The notes beneath the pieces are model-generated. The model saw only the letters and a program-made list of their open reading frames with translations. It did no database searches and was not told the origin of the DNA. DNA of 64,000 bases from assembly GCA_023515725.1 (NCBI GenBank), contig JALDTO010000212.1, positions 124,001 through 188,000 on the forward strand, given 5' to 3'. Origin of the DNA: Amoeboaphelidium protococcarum X5 (lineage: Eukaryota; Fungi; Aphelidiomycota). The translations under genes were made by a program, and so were the position numbers. How positions within the stretch are numbered: the first letter of the stretch is position 1; every line of letters starts with the position of its first letter. Below, in pieces: positions 18,674 to 32,809 of the stretch.

Positions 18674-21281
18674 TCAGACAAAGAACAGCACATTTGCCAA
18701 TGCTTGATTAATAGGCAACAGGTCAGAACGATAGTCGGATCCAGCAGATGCAGTAGATTAGGTATCTGATCCACTCCACAAATCACGTTTACTCAACAGT
18801 CTTGCGCGATATGCGAGCAGATCAGCATAATACACAGGCGGTACAAGGCTTGTGCTTCTGGTACATCTACTATACGTAAAGCACAACTTGTACACCAGTT
18901 CTTATAGCTTGTCACTTGAGAAATTGTTCTGATCCAACAGCACATGGTAGTGGCATGGACGGTTAGTTCCTTGAATACCAGAGTGAGAGTTCAGATAGAA
19001 ATCATACTCCACAGGGTGACAAATCTCAGTATCCACCACAGTACCAGGCATAACATTACCAGAACGGTCTCCCTCATTACGACCGGCAGGGAACAGACGA
19101 ATGTGGTGACGCTTCTGCGTGATGATGAACGTCACTGGCGGCTTGTAGTTTGGATCCAACTCAAAGCAAGCAGACTGGATAGCCTGCACCTCCTTCTTGA
19201 ACACCAAACCAAACTGACCCTCAGAGACACCATCACGGAAAATGATCAGACGCTCAGGCTTGACACCACCAGCGGAAAAGAAACGACGCAACAAAGTCTT
19301 CACCATCTCAGACAGACGCGTAACATTCTCTTCACGGCCATTCTGGAAATCAATAATGGAGCTGTACTGAGAAGCATAACGATCCATGGATCCCACAACA
19401 CCGACAATGGATGGCGGCACGCTGGTAGCAGAACGAGGCACACCAGTTGGATGCGTAACGTCAATACCAATCAAGATGGTTGGACGATCAAATCCAGGCA
19501 AGTCACCACCAATACGTGCATTCTAACCACCTAGCTTAGAGTTGATCTTCAACAACAAATTGGCCATATACTGCGGCTTTGGAGTGTAAGAATGCTTCAT
19601 CAGCATACACTGACTGGCAACTCCCAACTCAGAGTCACACAAACGCTTGATGGCACCATACACAGCGGCAGATCCACGTACCATGAACAGAATAAAGTCA
19701 ATACGTGCATTAATGCGCTGCTTCAACTGCTGCATCTTGGCCAGAATATCTTCAGGCTGCTCGGAAGCATACACAACCTCTGGACGTGGATTCTTGAATG
19801 GAACACCAGTATTACGTCCCATCTGAGCCAGCTCCTGAGCAAAGTACTGCACCTTCTGCGGTTGAGCATCACGCTGAGTTCCCACAACGATAACACCCCA
19901 GTTATTCACAGTGACACCATCAATGAAAGCACGACCTCTCATGTTCCAAGAGCCACCGGAAGCTTCACGAGGCTCAACAACCTTGCGATCCTTGTACAAG
20001 ATGGTAGGAGGATCCAGAACACGAGCCTTGACCTGAGACAGACGGTTGTCAATGTTCAAGCCAATATCAGCCAACTGGGAACTAGAGTTACATCCCAAAT
20101 CACGGAAACCATCCTCAATACGTCTGATACGATCACCAGGACGAGTAGCGGTAAACTTGATCATACTTGCAACCTGGTCAGCATCCAGCTTTGGAGCGTA
20201 CGGCTGAGATGGAACAACAGTACAAATCTCCATAGGGAACAGAGCACGGTTGGCACCACAGACAAAACACGGCAGGTTAGGATAACGCAGCTGAACATTG
20301 TAAGTGTCGCGGAAGTAGTCAGCCACACTGATAGTCTTACCGTCAGCATTGAACATGCAGCTGGCAACAGGATCCTGACTAACGTCCATAACACGAATGG
20401 TACGCTTAAAGTCGGATCTGTGAGTCAACTGCACCTTCAAATGACGCACAATCTTCTTCAAGCGCATAATGTCATCTCTACGTGGACGGAATTGAGCCAG
20501 ATCAGCCTGACTTCTCACTCCCCAAACTTCACACAGCAAATCCAGAACAGGCTAGTGCTTGTAAAAAGCAGATGCAGAGACATCCAAGTTCAACACCAGA
20601 CCACTCTGCACAGGACGCAGTGACTGGAAATACCCACTCCAAGCCTCAACACCACCACCCAGTCTTGTATTCTGCTGAGGATTGTAAAAGTTTCTACCAC
20701 GCGGCACCCACTTGTCAGAAGGCACGGCAGCCATAATGACATCCAGAGCAGTCAGAGCCTCCATAGGCATCTCACGCTGCTTACCACCGATAAAGTCAGC
20801 CAGCACAGATAACTGTACCACCTTGACAGCCTTCATGGTGATGGTGAAAGTCTTCTCACGACCCTCCACCTGCAGAGTTACTTCAAAGTTGCGCTCCTCA
20901 AACGGCAGAGGCTTGGTGGTGTAAGCATTGCTCTTACCATCATAAGCCACAGCGACACCAGTCAAGTCCTTTGCAAACTGCTTGGCCACCAGATTCAAAA
21001 CCTCTCTGTTGACAGCCGGCTTCATAGGATTCTTTAACACGACACCCTTCTGTCCAATCTTTGGAGCCTCTGGAGTCTTGGCACCGTGCTCCACAATGGT
21101 AACATCGTAAAAGTGTATAGCACCCTTTGGCAGTGTAGCCTACATTTAGAGAGATGACAACAATAACGAATAAATGATCAAAAATGTCAATACAAACAGT
21201 TCATACCTTGAACACATTGGCCAGGATGGTCACCTAACGACCTTTACTACCTCCTTTATCAGGACGATTTGGAGGATTCAT
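18674..21281 (-). CDS. AGO: Argonaute (N-PAZ-MID-PIWI)
   Basis: Intron 21206-21140. PAZ (ISVADYF...LRYPNLPC), [13 protein letters not shown] motifs [32 protein letters not shown]. Confidence 0.97.
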
Positions 21282-24324: not shown

Positions 24325-27045
24325 TCACCTTGCGCCCACTACTACTGACTGCACCACAATCAGAGTCATCAGCGGAATCAAAGATTCTTTAACGAAACTG
24401 TTCTTCGGTGTGGCAATACTGTAAATGAGCAGGAAAGTGAAGAATATAGCAGCAGGCAACACCACAGTACCAAACAAGTCCATCAGAATGACAAACTGCA
24501 TAGAGATACAGAAGGTACCACACAAATCTTTAACAAAGACCAGTTCGGCGAGATTGTGCACTGTGGAATTAATCCAACGACGACGTTGCGACAACAACAC
24601 GCGGAATTTATCAGGCACAACAGTCTCACATTGGGCCTGTGGCAAGAATATCATCTACCTCTTTGGGAAAGTCTTGAGCATCAGAGTGGACAAGAATCGA
24701 TCTTCACCCAATAGCAAAAGATTCTTCTTGTGCAAAGTATCAACAACATTCTGCGAATACTCTTCAATAATATCTGGATTTGCTAGAATAGGCACCCAGA
24801 ATCCATCACCCTTAGGAGATTTAATTCTATACATGGAGAAACAGCCGGGCAAGCAACTAACACCACCAAATATACTCTCGAAATTCTTCACCAGGTAATG
24901 GCTGATGAAGTACTCATACACCTGAATCATCGTCACCCAGGATGCATTAGGATTAGCCAGGCGCGTCTCACCACAGACTCCCATAAGTTTAGTGTCATTT
25001 CTCATTGCATTGACCATTTTGGGTAGAGAGTCCGGGTAGATCTTCGTATCAGCATCAACCATGAGGACCAGTTCAAAGCGATCACAATACACGCCAGTAA
25101 TAGAGCGAATCTTTGTAAATAAGTCATACTCCAACTCGGTCATTCTATCATCAAACATCACCTTACTCAGGAAATTCATTAAGATAATCTACGAATCTCT
25201 TTTACCTCTATTACCAGGCTTGGGCTCATTAGCTTCAGCAGGTGTACCGCATTTGACAACCAGCACGGTGGGTACGGAACGCCCATCATGATCAAATGTG
25301 CCATAGAACACCTGAGCCATGTTGTGCTGCTTTGATCCATCAGCAATGGCGACATAACTCTTTGGCTGAGCTTCTGGTTCACGCAGAGTCAACAAACTCT
25401 TACAAATCTCTGGAGTACTCTTACTCTGCCCACCGCCTGTAATGAGACCATCGGCCACCATGAAGATCAACTTTTATTCATCAGGGTAATGCGTCTCAGC
25501 GATGGATATCAGAGACTTTTTAATCTCATCCTCATTCTCACTGTACATGGTGACTAGTATCATGACATGACACGCGAATATACTCAGATCAATCTGAGAC
25601 AGATCCATATCCTCCGGAAATACCGACATTCTACTGGATTTGAACATTTACGTAATTGGTCTCTTTTAATCATCCAGTTATGTAAATCTGGACTGTCTGA
25701 ATGGTATAACACTTTTACGGCCATCCTAACCAGCTGGCTGAGTCAACATTTTACTTTTCACAGACTTTGGGATGACAACACCAGGCGGAACGTATGGAAT
25801 ACCTTTAGGCTCGGCGCTGAGAGCAGGAGCAACCACCCACGAATAAATCAGAGCCATTATGAAACGCACCAACACCAGACCCATAATAACGACCAGAATG
25901 ATGTAGTTGATGACATTGGCAGCAAAACAACCGACACTCTACTTGGACACCAAGCCGACTTGATACAGCTGAACAAGGCAGGGCACCTTTTCAGAAGCAG
26001 AGGGATCTTGCAAAAAATTCCTCGTAACATCCGTACCAATACCATTGATAATAATCTTATGAGCAGCAGGACCTAGAAATTCCGAGCCACCTTGCAGATA
26101 ATTGCTCACATCCAGCACATAACCATTATACACGAGCAGATTAGAATCCGTCTTCTATACATCTGACCACTCAAAAGACACACCAAGACCGGCAAGATTA
26201 CCAGACAGCTGACTAGCGGTATACGAATGACAGTGTTCAGGTGCGCCAGATATGGAACATTTCGTCTGAGGAATAGAGCCTATGGTCTACCCGTTACAAG
26301 CATCAGTATTAGGAACCCTGGGAAATAGGACCGATATATCGCGCGCTCTCCCACTTGACTAAAAGTCATTTATGGCACCAATAGATGCTGTGTGAAATCT
26401 TTACATATCATTAGGCTAAATCACGTACCATTGTCCGTGGATAGCCCAGGCATCAGGAAATGGAGGACTGTTGATTGGAGCACGATTACCCGTAGGCAAA
26501 CAGATGGTAGCCTGCAGACCAACAATCACAAAGCCCATCACAAAACAAGCTAGCAGGATGGCAAAGATCAAAGTCATCTTCTCTCGCCATGCCCACATCG
26601 CAACAGGGTCCTTTTTACCAAAACACTTGCGGATCATGATGTTAGGGAAACAGCAGGTGGAGGCTGTAACTAGATATATCCACCAGTCATACACGCGCTT
26701 CTTCTCTTGGTCCATTTATTATTATTACTACTTCATTCGCTATTCTTAATAAAGCTGCTGGTCATAGTTGTCCTCCTGATCATTATCGCCACTTCTACCA
26801 AGCGTGCTGACATACTGTGGACCACCGCCATTCTAATATGGCACTTGCTCAACTTGACGATGGAAATTATCTGCAATACGCGTGGTATTATCAGCAACCA
26901 GAGGCCTTCTAGCCACCGAATGACTTCTCTCCGGTCGTGTCAGACGAGATTTACTCCTCTGCAATTTCCTTGGCTTATACTGATTCTGCTGTTGATAGTA
27001 GAGATCACCAAGCTCTTCATCCGCATATTGATTATAAGGATTCAT
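24325..27045 (-). CDS. CHS: Chitin synthase (division 2, class IV-like, with cytochrome-b5-like region); C-terminally truncated
   Basis: [46 protein letters not shown]. The frame stops at 24325 before the usual last TM helices and the DDFSWG motif. Confidence 0.9.
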
Positions 27046-27498
27046 TCTCTCTCTCCCTATATCACTCAGATATTTATTTACAGATTTAAGGTAGAGTAAT
27101 ACTAATAAGAAGAAGACAACACAAAGTCAAGTTGAAATTTCGATTATATAACTTGCCAAATTTAGATTGCAAAGGCCGAATTTAGCCAATCAGCTAGCCT
27201 CTTGGCGCTCGCATTAAGATCGCTCGTCCGTTCTATTCACACAAGCACTGATATAGAGCTTACAAAGGAGGCACTCGGTCAAGTACGGAGTTCGAGAAAC
27301 GCAAAACCGCCTCGCAGTTTAAAATTACTAAACATAGAAAGTAAAATGAAAGTTCCCATTAATATTTTAAATGATTTTTAATTTTTATTTTGTTTTGTAA
27401 TTTTAAAAATAAATTCATTGCTATTTTGTTTCTTATCATGCACTATATCCGCCTTATAATAGGGGACATCTTAACTCGAATTCATTTTTTGCAGCAAA

Positions 27499-28878
27499 AT
27501 GTCTTAAGAAATCGACTTGGAACAGGTACGGCAGTTAGTAAATTAAGGTTTGAAGCGCAAGGAAATTTTAGATACTCTAAATTCTAGTGGAACAATCTGC
27601 TCCAAGTCCAAATTGGACCGGTTTATGACTGAACATGGATTGAGTACTGCTTTAAATAGAGCCACATTTGCGGATTAAAGTGAACATTGGATTGAAGAAG
27701 CTCGCCATCTAATTAATGGCGGGTCCACTTAACAATAATTATTGGATTGGCTGAAATAGAAGCATAATATTTAAATGTCCTTAAGGACTTTGCAATCGAT
27801 TTTGTCGCAGCATTAAATTGGAACGAGACATTGTGCGCTATCTCCTGTCGAAGTTTTGGATTTAGTGCATGTTGTAAATCAGGATGAAGGTGAAAGATTG
27901 GGAATTAGATCAACTACATAAGTCCTTCGTGAACTATCAGGCCAATAAGTATCTCGAGACATGGTTATGGTTTGCTAAAGATTCGACAATCCAGAGGCTG
28001 TGTAAATGCGTAAAAGGCGCAAGTTGAAACGCCGTGAATATTAAAATGATGGTCCTAATTAAGTGTGGCATATAGATGGCTTCGATAAGCTGTCGTAGTT
28101 TGGCTTTGGAATAAGTGCGTGTGTAGATGGTTTTAGTAGGTATGTTGTGTTTAGTATGGTCGCAGATACGAATAGGCCCGCGCGTTACATACTGGAATAT
28201 TTTCTGGATGCGGCTGACAAATGCAATGTTATGCCTGGAAAAGTTCGTGTTGATGGCGGAACTGAGAACAATTACATCAAGTAATTGCAAGAAATATTGG
28301 TAGGTGAGAACTCTTATATTGTGGGTTCATCCAATTTCAATACGCGTATAGAAAGTTACTGGGGCAGATAGAATCATTATGGGCTTGAATATTGGATAGG
28401 AACGCTGAACAATCTTCACTTTGCAGGTTATTTTAATACCACGCTTTATTCTCATAAGACAATTTCTCAGTATTGTTTTGGACATTATATCGCTGAGTGT
28501 TTAGATAAAATTACCACCTTGTGGAATTACCATAAGATTCGAAATCAAGGACAGCCCATCATGCGTTATCAAGTTCCCGAGATGTTTGATGGAGTAGAAT
28601 GTGGTTTGGAGCCTCCTCAAGACATGCGTGATATGGCTATTCAATTGTTTGGACCAAGTACTATAGATATGAATGATAGGTTTAGAATTAATTACGCTAG
28701 GCATCTTATTGATGAAGTTGTTATAGAGAAAGGTTTTGATCAACTTACCTTTGACAATTGTCAAGATGTGTTCAAGGCTTTAGTGTCCGATGGCGATCTC
28801 GTAAGCGCGCTGGATGCATTTAGAGATTAATTGTTGATAGCAGAATAGTAAGTGAGAGGGTAGGAAATTGCTTAGTGA
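27499..28878 (+). CDS. IS3EU-type DDE transposase (integrase core) with N-terminal HTH/Clr5-like repeats
   Basis: Intact 459-aa frame with TAR=Gln: RRKLKRREYQNDGPNQVWHIDGFDKL..FGFGISACVDGFSR, PGKVRVDGGTEN, GSSNFNTRIEKYW, WNYHKIR. Confidence 0.9.
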
Positions 28879-28963
28879 AGAATGGTCTGAATAATTAAAA
28901 ATTTCTTATTGCTATTACTATCTTTACGTACTCATTGTTAACTCCACCAGAGCTACTAAATAC

Positions 28964-30979
28964 TCAATCCTCAGTCAAAGTTGGCAATTTCTTCTACGCA
29001 GCATTTTTAGCACGCGTATTAGGTCTTCTGCTAGACGGACGTATGTTTTTAACAATAGGATCCACCAACTTAATCTTAGATTTCTCCTTTACTATCTGCA
29101 AATCCTGAGTGGCTTGATTATTAACTTCTACCTGTTTAGACACAGAAGTTATGGAGACATCCGACTTCAATGATGTCTTCTACTATCCAAGAGGATTAGG
29201 AGCGGCCTATGCTGGAGATCCAAACACAGTGGACTCGAATTTATCCATTAAGAGAGAATCTTCCATAATCTTCTCCATTACTAAAGACGGAATGGTCGCG
29301 ACATCTAAATGCAAAGCCTTGCAAATCTAATTGCACTAGTGCATAACGAAGAACTTCACAATTGCTGGTAAACCCATATTGCCAATACTGCAATCGGTGC
29401 CATTGACAGTGCACACCTAAAGATCTGTAAAGTGACACTTAGAGCCTTGAATATCAACTATCATTTACTCGTAGTTCTCCTTCTCAAACCAATAATAGGA
29501 GTAATGGGCAAAAGCCCAGGCCACTTCTTCACGAAAGTTCTCCTCATAAGTCTGATCATCATCACAAATTTGCATAAAATGCTCGTTGTCGATATACTTC
29601 ACAAATTGGCCATCTACGAAGGGTTCAACTGTCCATATCTTTGCTAGATCCACCATATCACCAAATTCCTCATTTTATTTGTCTCTAATCTCCAGCATCA
29701 CGCCAGCACAAACTCCACGCTACTCACCAGCAACCTATAGATATTCTTAACCCAGCAGCGTCTTAATCAATTCCGCGTCAAAATCTAGGAAGCACCTTTG
29801 AGCGCAAACAGAGTTTAATATTTCCCTAGCATGTAATCCATAATCATCGTCATCCTTATCAATTGCGCACTTAAAGACTACTGGCAGATCTGGAAAAAAC
29901 TTGACCAGAGATCCATTATAGTAGCATCTTTTTATATTCCCTTTGTTAGTCTTTCCTGCCAGATCTGGCATTCCAACTACTCCTGGATCCTCAGTGAACC
30001 AGGAGCCTGTTTCATAGTCGTAGACATGCACAACCACACTGCCTTACAAGGAGCGCGTATTTTTTATTACACGCTGAGGGGACACCTTGGAAATGTTTTC
30101 AAACTAGCAAAACTTATTCTTATGTTCAATCTAACTATTTCTCGCAACATTTGAACTGACAGGTATGATCGTAGACTCCTGCGCAGATTTGATCTTTTTG
30201 ACAGGCTTGACAGGTTGAATAATAGGCTCATCTAAAGTACGCGTCGGTTCAACAATTTCAAAATCATCCTTATCCTGCATCTTCTCATCTGGCAAACCAT
30301 ACTAGTAATCAAAGTCCTCGACATTCAAAAAATTCAGCTACTGTAGAGACTCATAGTTTCTCTTTAAACTAGGATGCAATTACACGCGATTGCTTTCAAC
30401 CAACGGAATCAAATATAGCACCTTATCCTTATTAGAGGTATACTTACATCCTGCCAATTGAATATTCTGGGTCCATTATATTACGTCAAAATCAACTCCA
30501 AATTAGGGGATTTGGTGGATTTGACTTTGTCCAATTGACGATTGCTCAACTTGATAGTGAAACAATGCACAAGCTTATGCTAAGACAGATTGATAATTGT
30601 CATTATACTTGTCAATCTAAATCATCTATGGGCCAACATTTTCCAGACGCTTAAATTATCCAACCTTTGATCCTGAAATACAAGGGACAATGCTAATTTG
30701 CACCAGCGCGTTTTTACGCGTCAAACCTCTATTTCCACTACCAGGACCGTTTCTATGAACAGGGGGCGGCGGCTTAGTCTGGTATCCACTGTGCAATCTA
30801 TTTACCATTGACTCGGTTCTTGTCTGCACCGCAAGCTTTTTCTTTTACTCAAATTGCATTTGTGAATGCATCAACTAGGCTTGCGCCTATTGCCAAGATT
30901 TACATCCAGCACAATGACAGTCCTCCCTTTTGAGTCCGGACGAATTGGGACATAACACATCTTACAACGGATTAAACAT
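28964..30979 (-). CDS. Alpha-kinase (eEF2K/MHCK-type) with Cys-rich N-terminus; transposon cargo
   Basis: 671-aa frame with TAR=Gln: VVFKC, VEPFVDGQFVKY, AFAHYSY, IVDIQG, FTDLQV, GNMG, and the HQCNQIC zinc site. Confidence 0.88.
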
Positions 30980-32422
30980 GCTTGATACTGATTCTATTCA
31001 AAAGACACTAGGATATAGATATCAACTAAAGAGATTGCGTATATTTGTCGCGTTTTAGTTATCTGAACTATGAGAGCTGTTATTAATAATATGATTGCGT
31101 AAGATCTTAGAGTGGCGTAAGGGGGGTGGCGCAGCAAGTAATGACAACACTACGGCGTCCCAATGCTGCATTGCTTATACCTGTATGCTTATCTCGCAAA
31201 TAAGATTGTACGTTGTTAAAAAGTAGTTTAGTGAATAGTGTGTAAGAGATAATAAAGTATCATTCAGTATCAAAACAATTTATCACAAATAATCGCTTAC
31301 TTACTGTTAAATTGCAAGCGCCAGTTTCGAGATTAACGCATCAAGCAATCAGTTGTGACAAAGATCGAGCAACCACTACTCACAAACAGTTTGCAAATTT
31401 TTGCTTGAGGTTTGGTGCATATATTTCTTTACTAGAGAAGCGGAGCAAATACTGCTATATTAAAAATCTTGAGATATTTACACCAATACTGCTGCAGTTG
31501 CGCAAGTTGCACATTAAAGTAAAGCAACACACACACGGTGCATGACTAATACATTTGATTTTGCAGCATGATATAAATAAGAAAGTAATCACAAAAATTA
31601 ATCAATTTGTTAAGTCGCATTCGCGTATTACAAGTGCAAAAACGTTATGTATTAATGTGAGGCACTGATTGCGGCTCTCGAACATTAAAAACAAAAACAG
31701 TTGTAAGAAACAAATATTCGTTTCTGCTTTTTAAATAGCGACGCGCTTTTGCGGCTCTCGGATTCCGTAGTCAAGCATCGGGAAACTATTAGTAATGCAA
31801 CATATACTAACTTTTTACGTAATTTATGTTCTCTCTCTCTCTCTGAAGGCCGACCCAAATGCAATGAGTTCATTTGTTGATGTCCATACACGCATTTCAT
31901 GATACAACATTTTAATGCTTCTCTTTCTGCAGTCTGCCAACTACAGTACTAACGACCCATAAAGCGCGGAATTATATAAAATACAGTTTGCAGTTACCAT
32001 TTCTGACCAGTGATTAACATACCTTTATCAAGCCCAACACTTGATGATTAAAATCATAGAGCTGTGGACAAAGCCTGCAACAAAGAGGATCATGTAAGAG
32101 TGAAACAGAGTCGCTTCTACAAACGGTCTCAACAGGACTTTTTGATGATGATGATAATGATAAACTCGTGAAGTCTTGATAAATTGCAGTCAGATTTATG
32201 TGAAAATGATTAAAATATTAAAAATTTGAGTTAACAGACTGAATTAAAGCGACCTGTCCAATCAGAGAGTGACTTGTTCTCTAGTTCTCTTTAGCTGTCT
32301 TTTCTCTCTCTACATTTTCGCTTTGCAATCGTTGAATTATTCTGTACCGCTCCAGGCTCTTGTTAAATCGTTATATATTCATTTGCTCACGTACTCTAAT
32401 AAAATAAAATCTTATATTAATA

Positions 32423-32809
32423 ATGAATGCACCTGCTAGGCATGAGATTATTGTACTACCCGATGGAGTGAAGAAGATCACTGTGAAATAGGACATTAAG
32501 ATACCGAATGCGGCGACATTCGAGATTCAGCGAGAAGATCATACGCTGGGAAATGTGCTCAGAGAATATTTGCTGTAGAATCCCAAGGTTTTATTTGCCG
32601 CGTACAAGATGCCGCATCCTTTGAATCCGTGGATAGAACTGAAAGTACAAGTGACCGCAGACACTACGCCCAGGAAAGCTGTAATATAGGCTCTGAATCG
32701 CATAATCATTGACGGTAATCATATGAGCGCCTAGTTTAAACAAGAAATTGAAAGATTCCAGCGACGTAGAGGCATTCATTAATAGTCGACTTCTTCTTAT
32801 TATCAATGA
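32423..32809 (+). CDS. RPB11: RNA polymerase II subunit RPB11
   Basis: MNAP...KIPNAATFEIQREDHTLGN...VLFAAYKMPHPL; ends in TGA. Confidence 0.95.

Follow-up and report, generated by a model that had tools for sequence, protein, structure and literature searches.

We analysed a 64,000-nucleotide stretch of the genome of Amoeboaphelidium protococcarum X5 (contig JALDTO010000212.1, positions 124,001 to 188,000; hereafter the window) and found in it a 4486-bp DNA transposon at positions 27284-31769. It carries a DDE transposase gene and a convergent alpha-kinase gene between terminal inverted repeats (TIRs) and is bounded by two GTCAAG hexamers, a perfect 6-bp target site duplication (TSD). The hexamers, both TIRs and both genes were found where an initial annotation of the sequence had placed them (Table 1). 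The TIRs, identical at 26/32 positions over the first 32, could be extended to 33/41 and form the longest of the 152 inverted pairs in the surrounding 7 kb. Both open reading frames (ORFs) are uninterrupted under translation table 6 and each is closed by TGA, with 22 in-frame TAR codons in the transposase and 28 in the kinase. Among 300 shuffled versions of the element, only one yielded an ORF that matched the kinase frame in length. Judging by its match to the TIR core, the subterminal 12-bp repeat is likely to be an extra, putative transposase-binding site.

Table 1. Features of the transposon and its insertion site, in window coordinates
Feature	Position	Strand	Remarks
Left TSD, GTCAAG	27278..27283	+	other copies have other 6-mers
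Left TIR, 41 bp, starts TACGG	27284..27324	+	33/41 identical to right TIR
AT-rich imperfect palindrome just inside left TIR, upstream of transposase	27318..27407	.	72% over 94 bp
DDE transposase, 459 aa (table 6), PF24764 rva_4	27499..28878	+
Alpha-kinase (second gene), 671 aa (table 6)	28964..30979	-	convergent with transposase, 85-bp gap
Presumed promoter/5' UTR of kinase, about 750 bp	30980..31728	-
Subterminal exact repeat of 12-bp TIR core	31669..31680	+	second occurrence 31749-31760
Right TIR, ends CCGTA	31729..31769	-	33/41 identical to left TIR
Right TSD, GTCAAG	31770..31775	+

In a profile search the transposase matched rva_4 (PF24764) with 98 bits (E 6e-27), and its nearest look-alikes were eukaryotic rva_4 proteins. 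Its DDE residues are D193, D252 and E285, a basic KRRKLKRR motif lies at residues 172-179, and no HHCC spacing was seen in the protein by eye. IS3EU elements have TA..TA ends and 6-bp TSDs (PMC10045372), and those described encode two proteins (PMC8232023). Our element shares these traits, with TACGG..CCGTA termini, 41-bp TIRs at 80% identity, an integrase-like DDE core and a first Asp (D193) within 100-300 aa of the N-terminus, as the IS3EU/GingerRoot definition asks (Repbase; PMC10045372, PMC6839031). These traits support the IS3EU assignment of the initial annotation. Membership of the Kyakuja-Dileera-Zisupton group, in which TSDs are 7-8 bp long (PMC12730594), was ruled out by the rva_4 transposase and the 6-bp TSD.

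The kinase protein consists of a Cys-rich low-complexity N-terminal half, an alpha-kinase domain at about residues 345-560 (window positions about 29950-29300) and a basic C-terminal tail. It matched the C-terminal half of the PF02816 profile (positions 89-185) with 81 bits (E 1e-21; cut-off 21.3). Like cellular alpha-kinases (PF02816: eEF2K, MHCK, TRPM7, ALPK), it keeps the catalytic and zinc motifs of the C-lobe (E452-P, H492, D509-I-Q-G, T-D519-L-Q521, G533-N-M-G and H547/C549/C553, including the His/His/Cys/Cys zinc site); unlike them, it is borne by a transposon and has a divergent N-lobe. Of the motifs initially listed for it, DIQG, TD-x-Q, GNxG and the zinc ligands were therefore recovered, while the catalytic Lys could be placed by eye only, at K370 (VVFK), with no match to the hidden Markov model or in alignments. 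Two other N-lobe candidates, G347-x-x-K-R-C-Y and the helix-C Glu E386, were likewise picked by eye. Homolog searches with TAR-free pieces returned the window's own fragments or nothing, blanks that reflect short queries and length limits and not rarity.

Comparison of the kinase with the older relics C212 and C233 (84% DNA identity) gave dN/dS values of 0.058 for the C-lobe (dS 0.73), 0.21 for the N-lobe part and 0.38 for the tail, with dS in kinase-relic comparisons of about 0.5-0.7. By this measure the C-lobe is under purifying selection. The N-lobe part is under selection too, and K370 is replaced by Asn in a dead relic. The family has thus been resident in the lineage for two waves or more and has retained the kinase. 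Of the 20 PF02816 matches in the genome, 19 fall in this transposon family.

The 23.6-Mb assembly was searched for further copies. It contains 17 full-length matches, 16 of them flanked and one a flankless contig (C104) of exactly 4486 bp. Fifteen of the flanked copies are identical and one carries a single change, although such perfect identity may be flattered by the assembler. Further pieces comprise one copy split by a 4036-bp nested element, two cut at scaffold gaps (N) and five contig ends with 75-76-bp stubs. Altogether 21 distinct left and 20 distinct right flanks were counted. Perfect 6-bp TSDs numbered 11 as assembled and 15 after re-pairing of the flanks. No two of the 15 are alike, and they show a weak bias towards C-G at the centre (10/15 and 8/15); at four sites the duplication is imperfect. 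The element moves as a complete 4486-bp unit, kinase included, and each insertion duplicates 6 bp of a nearly random target. Every assembled copy long enough has both genes, and no kinase-less derivative was found among them. A TIR pattern scan for non-autonomous derivatives gave only 5 extra exact matches, about the chance level. The presence of the kinase in the copies and its low dN/dS support its being an integral part of the element, as had been proposed.

At the four imperfect junctions (L006, L010, L015, L016), three duplications are one base off, and at L016 an 8-bp repeat of the left flank is preceded by 13 additional bases that begin with TACGG. Two copies on C142 (L011, 361907-366392, and L012, 18577-23062) lie in opposite orientation and have swapped TSDs, AGCCAG and GACGCG, which may reflect either an inversion of about 340 kb by recombination between the copies or a misjoin.

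We also compared sequencing runs. Two source-run contigs cover the element without differences, at a depth of 1382-1454 against 46-59 for single flanking haplotypes; contig depth is not copy number as such, and the ratio of about 25 agrees with the count in the assembly. Near-identical elements were found at about 1-2 times flank depth in three other samples: one that bears the same organism label (the second sample) and two metagenomes, from a biofilm (2013) and from freshwater (2024). Copy number differs about twentyfold between samples. The biofilm copy has 10 differences in 4.5 kb, and independent samples differ by about 0.2%. An empty site was found as well: one contig from the biofilm runs from 27283 straight to 31830 and lacks the element, though its right flank differs. 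Contigs of the second sample break off at 27277 and start again at 31770, with 30 unmapped letters between them, a pattern that, from the table of mapped pieces, would correspond to an empty site with a single GTCAAG. The distinct TSDs and flanks, the high depth in the source run compared with the low depth elsewhere and the empty site show that the burst was recent and strain-specific. The element has recently been amplified to about 20 copies in this strain, in keeping with the recent activity first suggested for it.

The source run has two flank haplotypes, several percent apart and of similar depth, at window positions 26600-27283 and 31770-32450, which would fit a hybrid or duplicated genome; the second of the two resembles the biofilm empty-site contig.

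Reading of the two genes depends on the genetic code of the host, for which UAR=Gln has been published (PMC5304391), and the element ORFs can be read throughout only with TAR=Gln. TAR codons make up 49% and 58% of the Gln codons in the element ORFs, within the 32-73% range of host genes in the window. When the element is compared with an older relic, corresponding codons show TAG in exchange with TAA and CAG with TAG, and the conserved Gln of the kinase TD-x-Q motif is encoded by TAG. These codon patterns support the earlier proposal that the element is adapted to this code and suggest long residence in a TAR=Gln host.

The IS3EU and alpha-kinase pairing itself, initially thought to be new, is already catalogued, one of the outcomes that the initial annotation had named as refuting. 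IS3EU families were described by Kojima (2025; PMC12730594) in seven species of rust and in Tuber indicum, those of the rusts with 6-bp TSDs, TIRs of more than 30 bp and TAYGG..CCRTA ends. According to that paper, all TET+ IS3EU families have a TET/JBP gene between oppositely oriented transposase and alpha-kinase genes; it leaves unstated whether the transposase/kinase pair is convergent or divergent. Our element resembles the TET+ IS3EU of Pucciniales and Tuber indicum (for example IS3EU-1_PGra, IS3EU-7_PSt and IS3EU-1_TuIn) in its termini, long TIRs and TSD length and in having an alpha-kinase gene opposite to the transposase and inside the TIRs. It differs from them in having no TET/JBP gene, with its two genes only 85 bp apart, in single-ORF genes that need no introns, in the TAR=Gln code and in a host outside Dikarya. 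The TET/JBP profile PF20515 had no match genome-wide, though its control was silent too. REP9/Styx of Zymoseptoria is likewise an IS3EU-related element of a fungus, active in recent times and equipped with TIRs and 6-bp TSDs, but it has four genes and no kinase is mentioned (PMC8232023). What sets our element apart is the lack of TET/JBP, genes that can do without introns, the recoded host and the strain-specific burst.

The second-gene slot was further examined in 80 metagenome loci with related transposases, fetched with a degenerate pattern for the first-Asp motif; a DDE motif pattern had no match in viral contigs. At the best loci the transposases are 30-35% identical to ours over about 300 aa. 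Most loci were too short to place a second gene inside an element. Convergent HECT-type second genes were found at L061, L087 and L106, and at L104 by its N-terminal module, while a convergent RING gene was firm at L115 and recognized by eye at L114. Seven loci have divergent BTB-like genes beside the transposase, identified by a weak Pfam match (E 0.01) and mutual similarity. One of these genes lies inside a complete IS3EU-like element (L063:634-5776) with a 25/25 TIR start, TATGG ends and the 6-bp TSD CGATTG. An alpha-kinase as second gene sets our element apart from these IS3EU-like loci, with HECT in the coral-like and divergent BTB-like genes in the fungal-like metagenome loci. We found no report of IS3EU with HECT in a literature search. 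Together these genes suggest that the second slot of IS3EU holds protein-modifying enzymes.

We conclude that the element is probably an autonomous IS3EU (IS3EU/GingerRoot) transposon of the alpha-kinase-bearing kind known from rusts and Tuber, in a form without TET/JBP. From what is known of the family, its RNase H-fold DDE transposase would bind the TIRs, cleave the ends and join them across a 6-bp stagger, probably helped at the TIRs by the subterminal 12-bp repeat. The kinase would be a nuclear Ser/Thr accessory protein of the element that aids transposition by phosphorylating a host protein which restrains transposons or handles the DNA break (the target we favour), or the transposase itself. 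Several results weigh against this picture. No RNA run contained the element. None of the 80 metagenome loci had an alpha-kinase, though only 19 of them had at least 3 kb downstream. The kinase N-lobe was neither recovered by PF02816 nor put in register by pairwise alignment. A profile of the N-terminal module of the HECT-type genes, built from the longer members of a set of 114 homologs, gave the kinase a lower score than shuffles, so a shared module was rejected at this sensitivity. Finally, the kinase may have been captured independently of the rust IS3EU kinases.

As to what the kinase does, the HECT, RING and BTB-like genes found in the slot elsewhere lead us to read it as an accessory protein-modifying enzyme and not as an effector. 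Given the class, we lean towards a dedicated accessory protein acting on a host restriction or repair protein, and the Piwi-domain and C5-methylase-like genes of the host count for such a target. A bolder version, in which the kinase disables host defence and the second IS3EU gene is in general an exchangeable position for enzymes that act on host proteins as counter-defence (alpha-kinase here and in rusts, HECT or RING ligases and BTB adaptors elsewhere), is put forward tentatively and seems on balance unlikely. The kinase might instead regulate the element's own transposase, by activating it, by affecting its stability or by controlling copy number. Two-protein DNA transposons, Harbinger for one, need a partner protein, and this role would fit both the joint presence of the two genes in the copies and the selection on the kinase; it is set against the unrelated chemistries that occupy the slot in other IS3EU-like loci, and the 15-20 more copies that arose argue against strong self-limitation. 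We consider it possible but doubtful, and the self-regulatory and host-target roles are not mutually exclusive. The weakest of the three proposed roles is that of a mobile effector, cargo that benefits the parasite, for example by acting on its algal host, and is merely spread by the transposon. Biotrophic rusts have expanded sets of alpha-kinases (79 and 39 copies are tabulated in PMC4469406; also PMC5295586), and the host is probably an intracellular parasite (from its code; PMC5304391). However, no signal-like hydrophobic stretch was seen by eye at the kinase N-terminus, the copy difference between samples is large, older kinase copies decayed along with their elements instead of being kept, and the rust expansion is plausibly itself a footprint of IS3EU copies. 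An effector role is very unlikely.

It is slightly less probable still that copy number and identity are in part an assembly artefact, with one collapsed repeat unitig pasted at many sites. De Bruijn assembly would predict a contig that is exactly the element (C104) and contig ends with short stubs; the swapped flanks on C142, the two copies cut at N and the dropping of rare variants from Logan contigs point the same way. Pasting cannot, however, make 15 different perfect TSDs, the source-run depth agrees with about 20-25 copies, and independent samples are only about 0.2% apart. Such an artefact could affect only how exactly the copies agree and how their flanks pair; that the burst took place is not in doubt from it.

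IS3EU elements are poorly studied, and the literature covered holds no tested function for the second gene; the pairing with an alpha-kinase is on record only as a passing remark on rust and truffle elements. Its extension to a recoded lineage outside Dikarya overturns nothing established. Under the tentative swappable-slot reading, the kinase-bearing IS3EU branch would be as old as the fungal root, and our element would be the first tractable case in which a DNA transposon phosphorylates a silencing or repair factor of its host and thereby furthers its spread. Small, intact, free of any splicing model, just amplified in one strain and at low copy elsewhere, the element is a good test case for a transposon-encoded kinase. 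Where fungal genomes show alpha-kinase 'expansions', the numbers may be counts of transposons.

A chitin synthase gene (24325-27045, minus strand) starts at 27045, and the element lies upstream of this start at a distance of 233 bp. Further left of the insertion is an Argonaute gene at window positions 18674-21229 (Piwi match C211:142800-143693). The element nested in the kinase of one copy (L050:4040-8075, corresponding to G000:C146:611539-615574) has a 9-bp TSD and GG..CC ends; its table-6 ORF of 1224 codons is intact and has DDE-like motifs and a weak DUF6729 match (E 0.09). It is probably Mutator-like, and its position in a kinase copy indicates that a second transposon family was active after the burst began.

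The only PF02816 match unrelated to the transposon family (G000:C98:489639-490280; L056:3650-4300) is distant and has an in-frame TGA; with 26% identity over 124 aa it was ruled out as a recent donor of the element kinase. It is located downstream of what by eye is a fragment of a FunK-like kinase, and a 14-bp TIR-like word after it recurs at two other loci, by chance or as part of another relic family. A likeness between the element kinase's N-terminus and the zinc-ribbon/ubiquitin-like-looking module of the HECT-type genes came to only a weak in-register high-scoring segment pair (E 0.38) and was discarded.

After the gap at a truncated copy on G000:C264, a D5/SF3 primase-helicase-like ORF adjoins an 864-codon tyrosine-recombinase-like (Crypton-like) ORF by eye (L054:3760-8000), possibly another mobile element. 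The same contig carries a TnpB/Fanzor-like ORF with a RuvC-I-like IGVDVG motif, interrupted by TGA and also recognized by eye (L055:1-2100; G000:C264:287000-289100). About 2.5 kb from it, a 118-bp stretch (G000:C264:291589-291701) is 75% like window positions 31185-31302, upstream of the element kinase.

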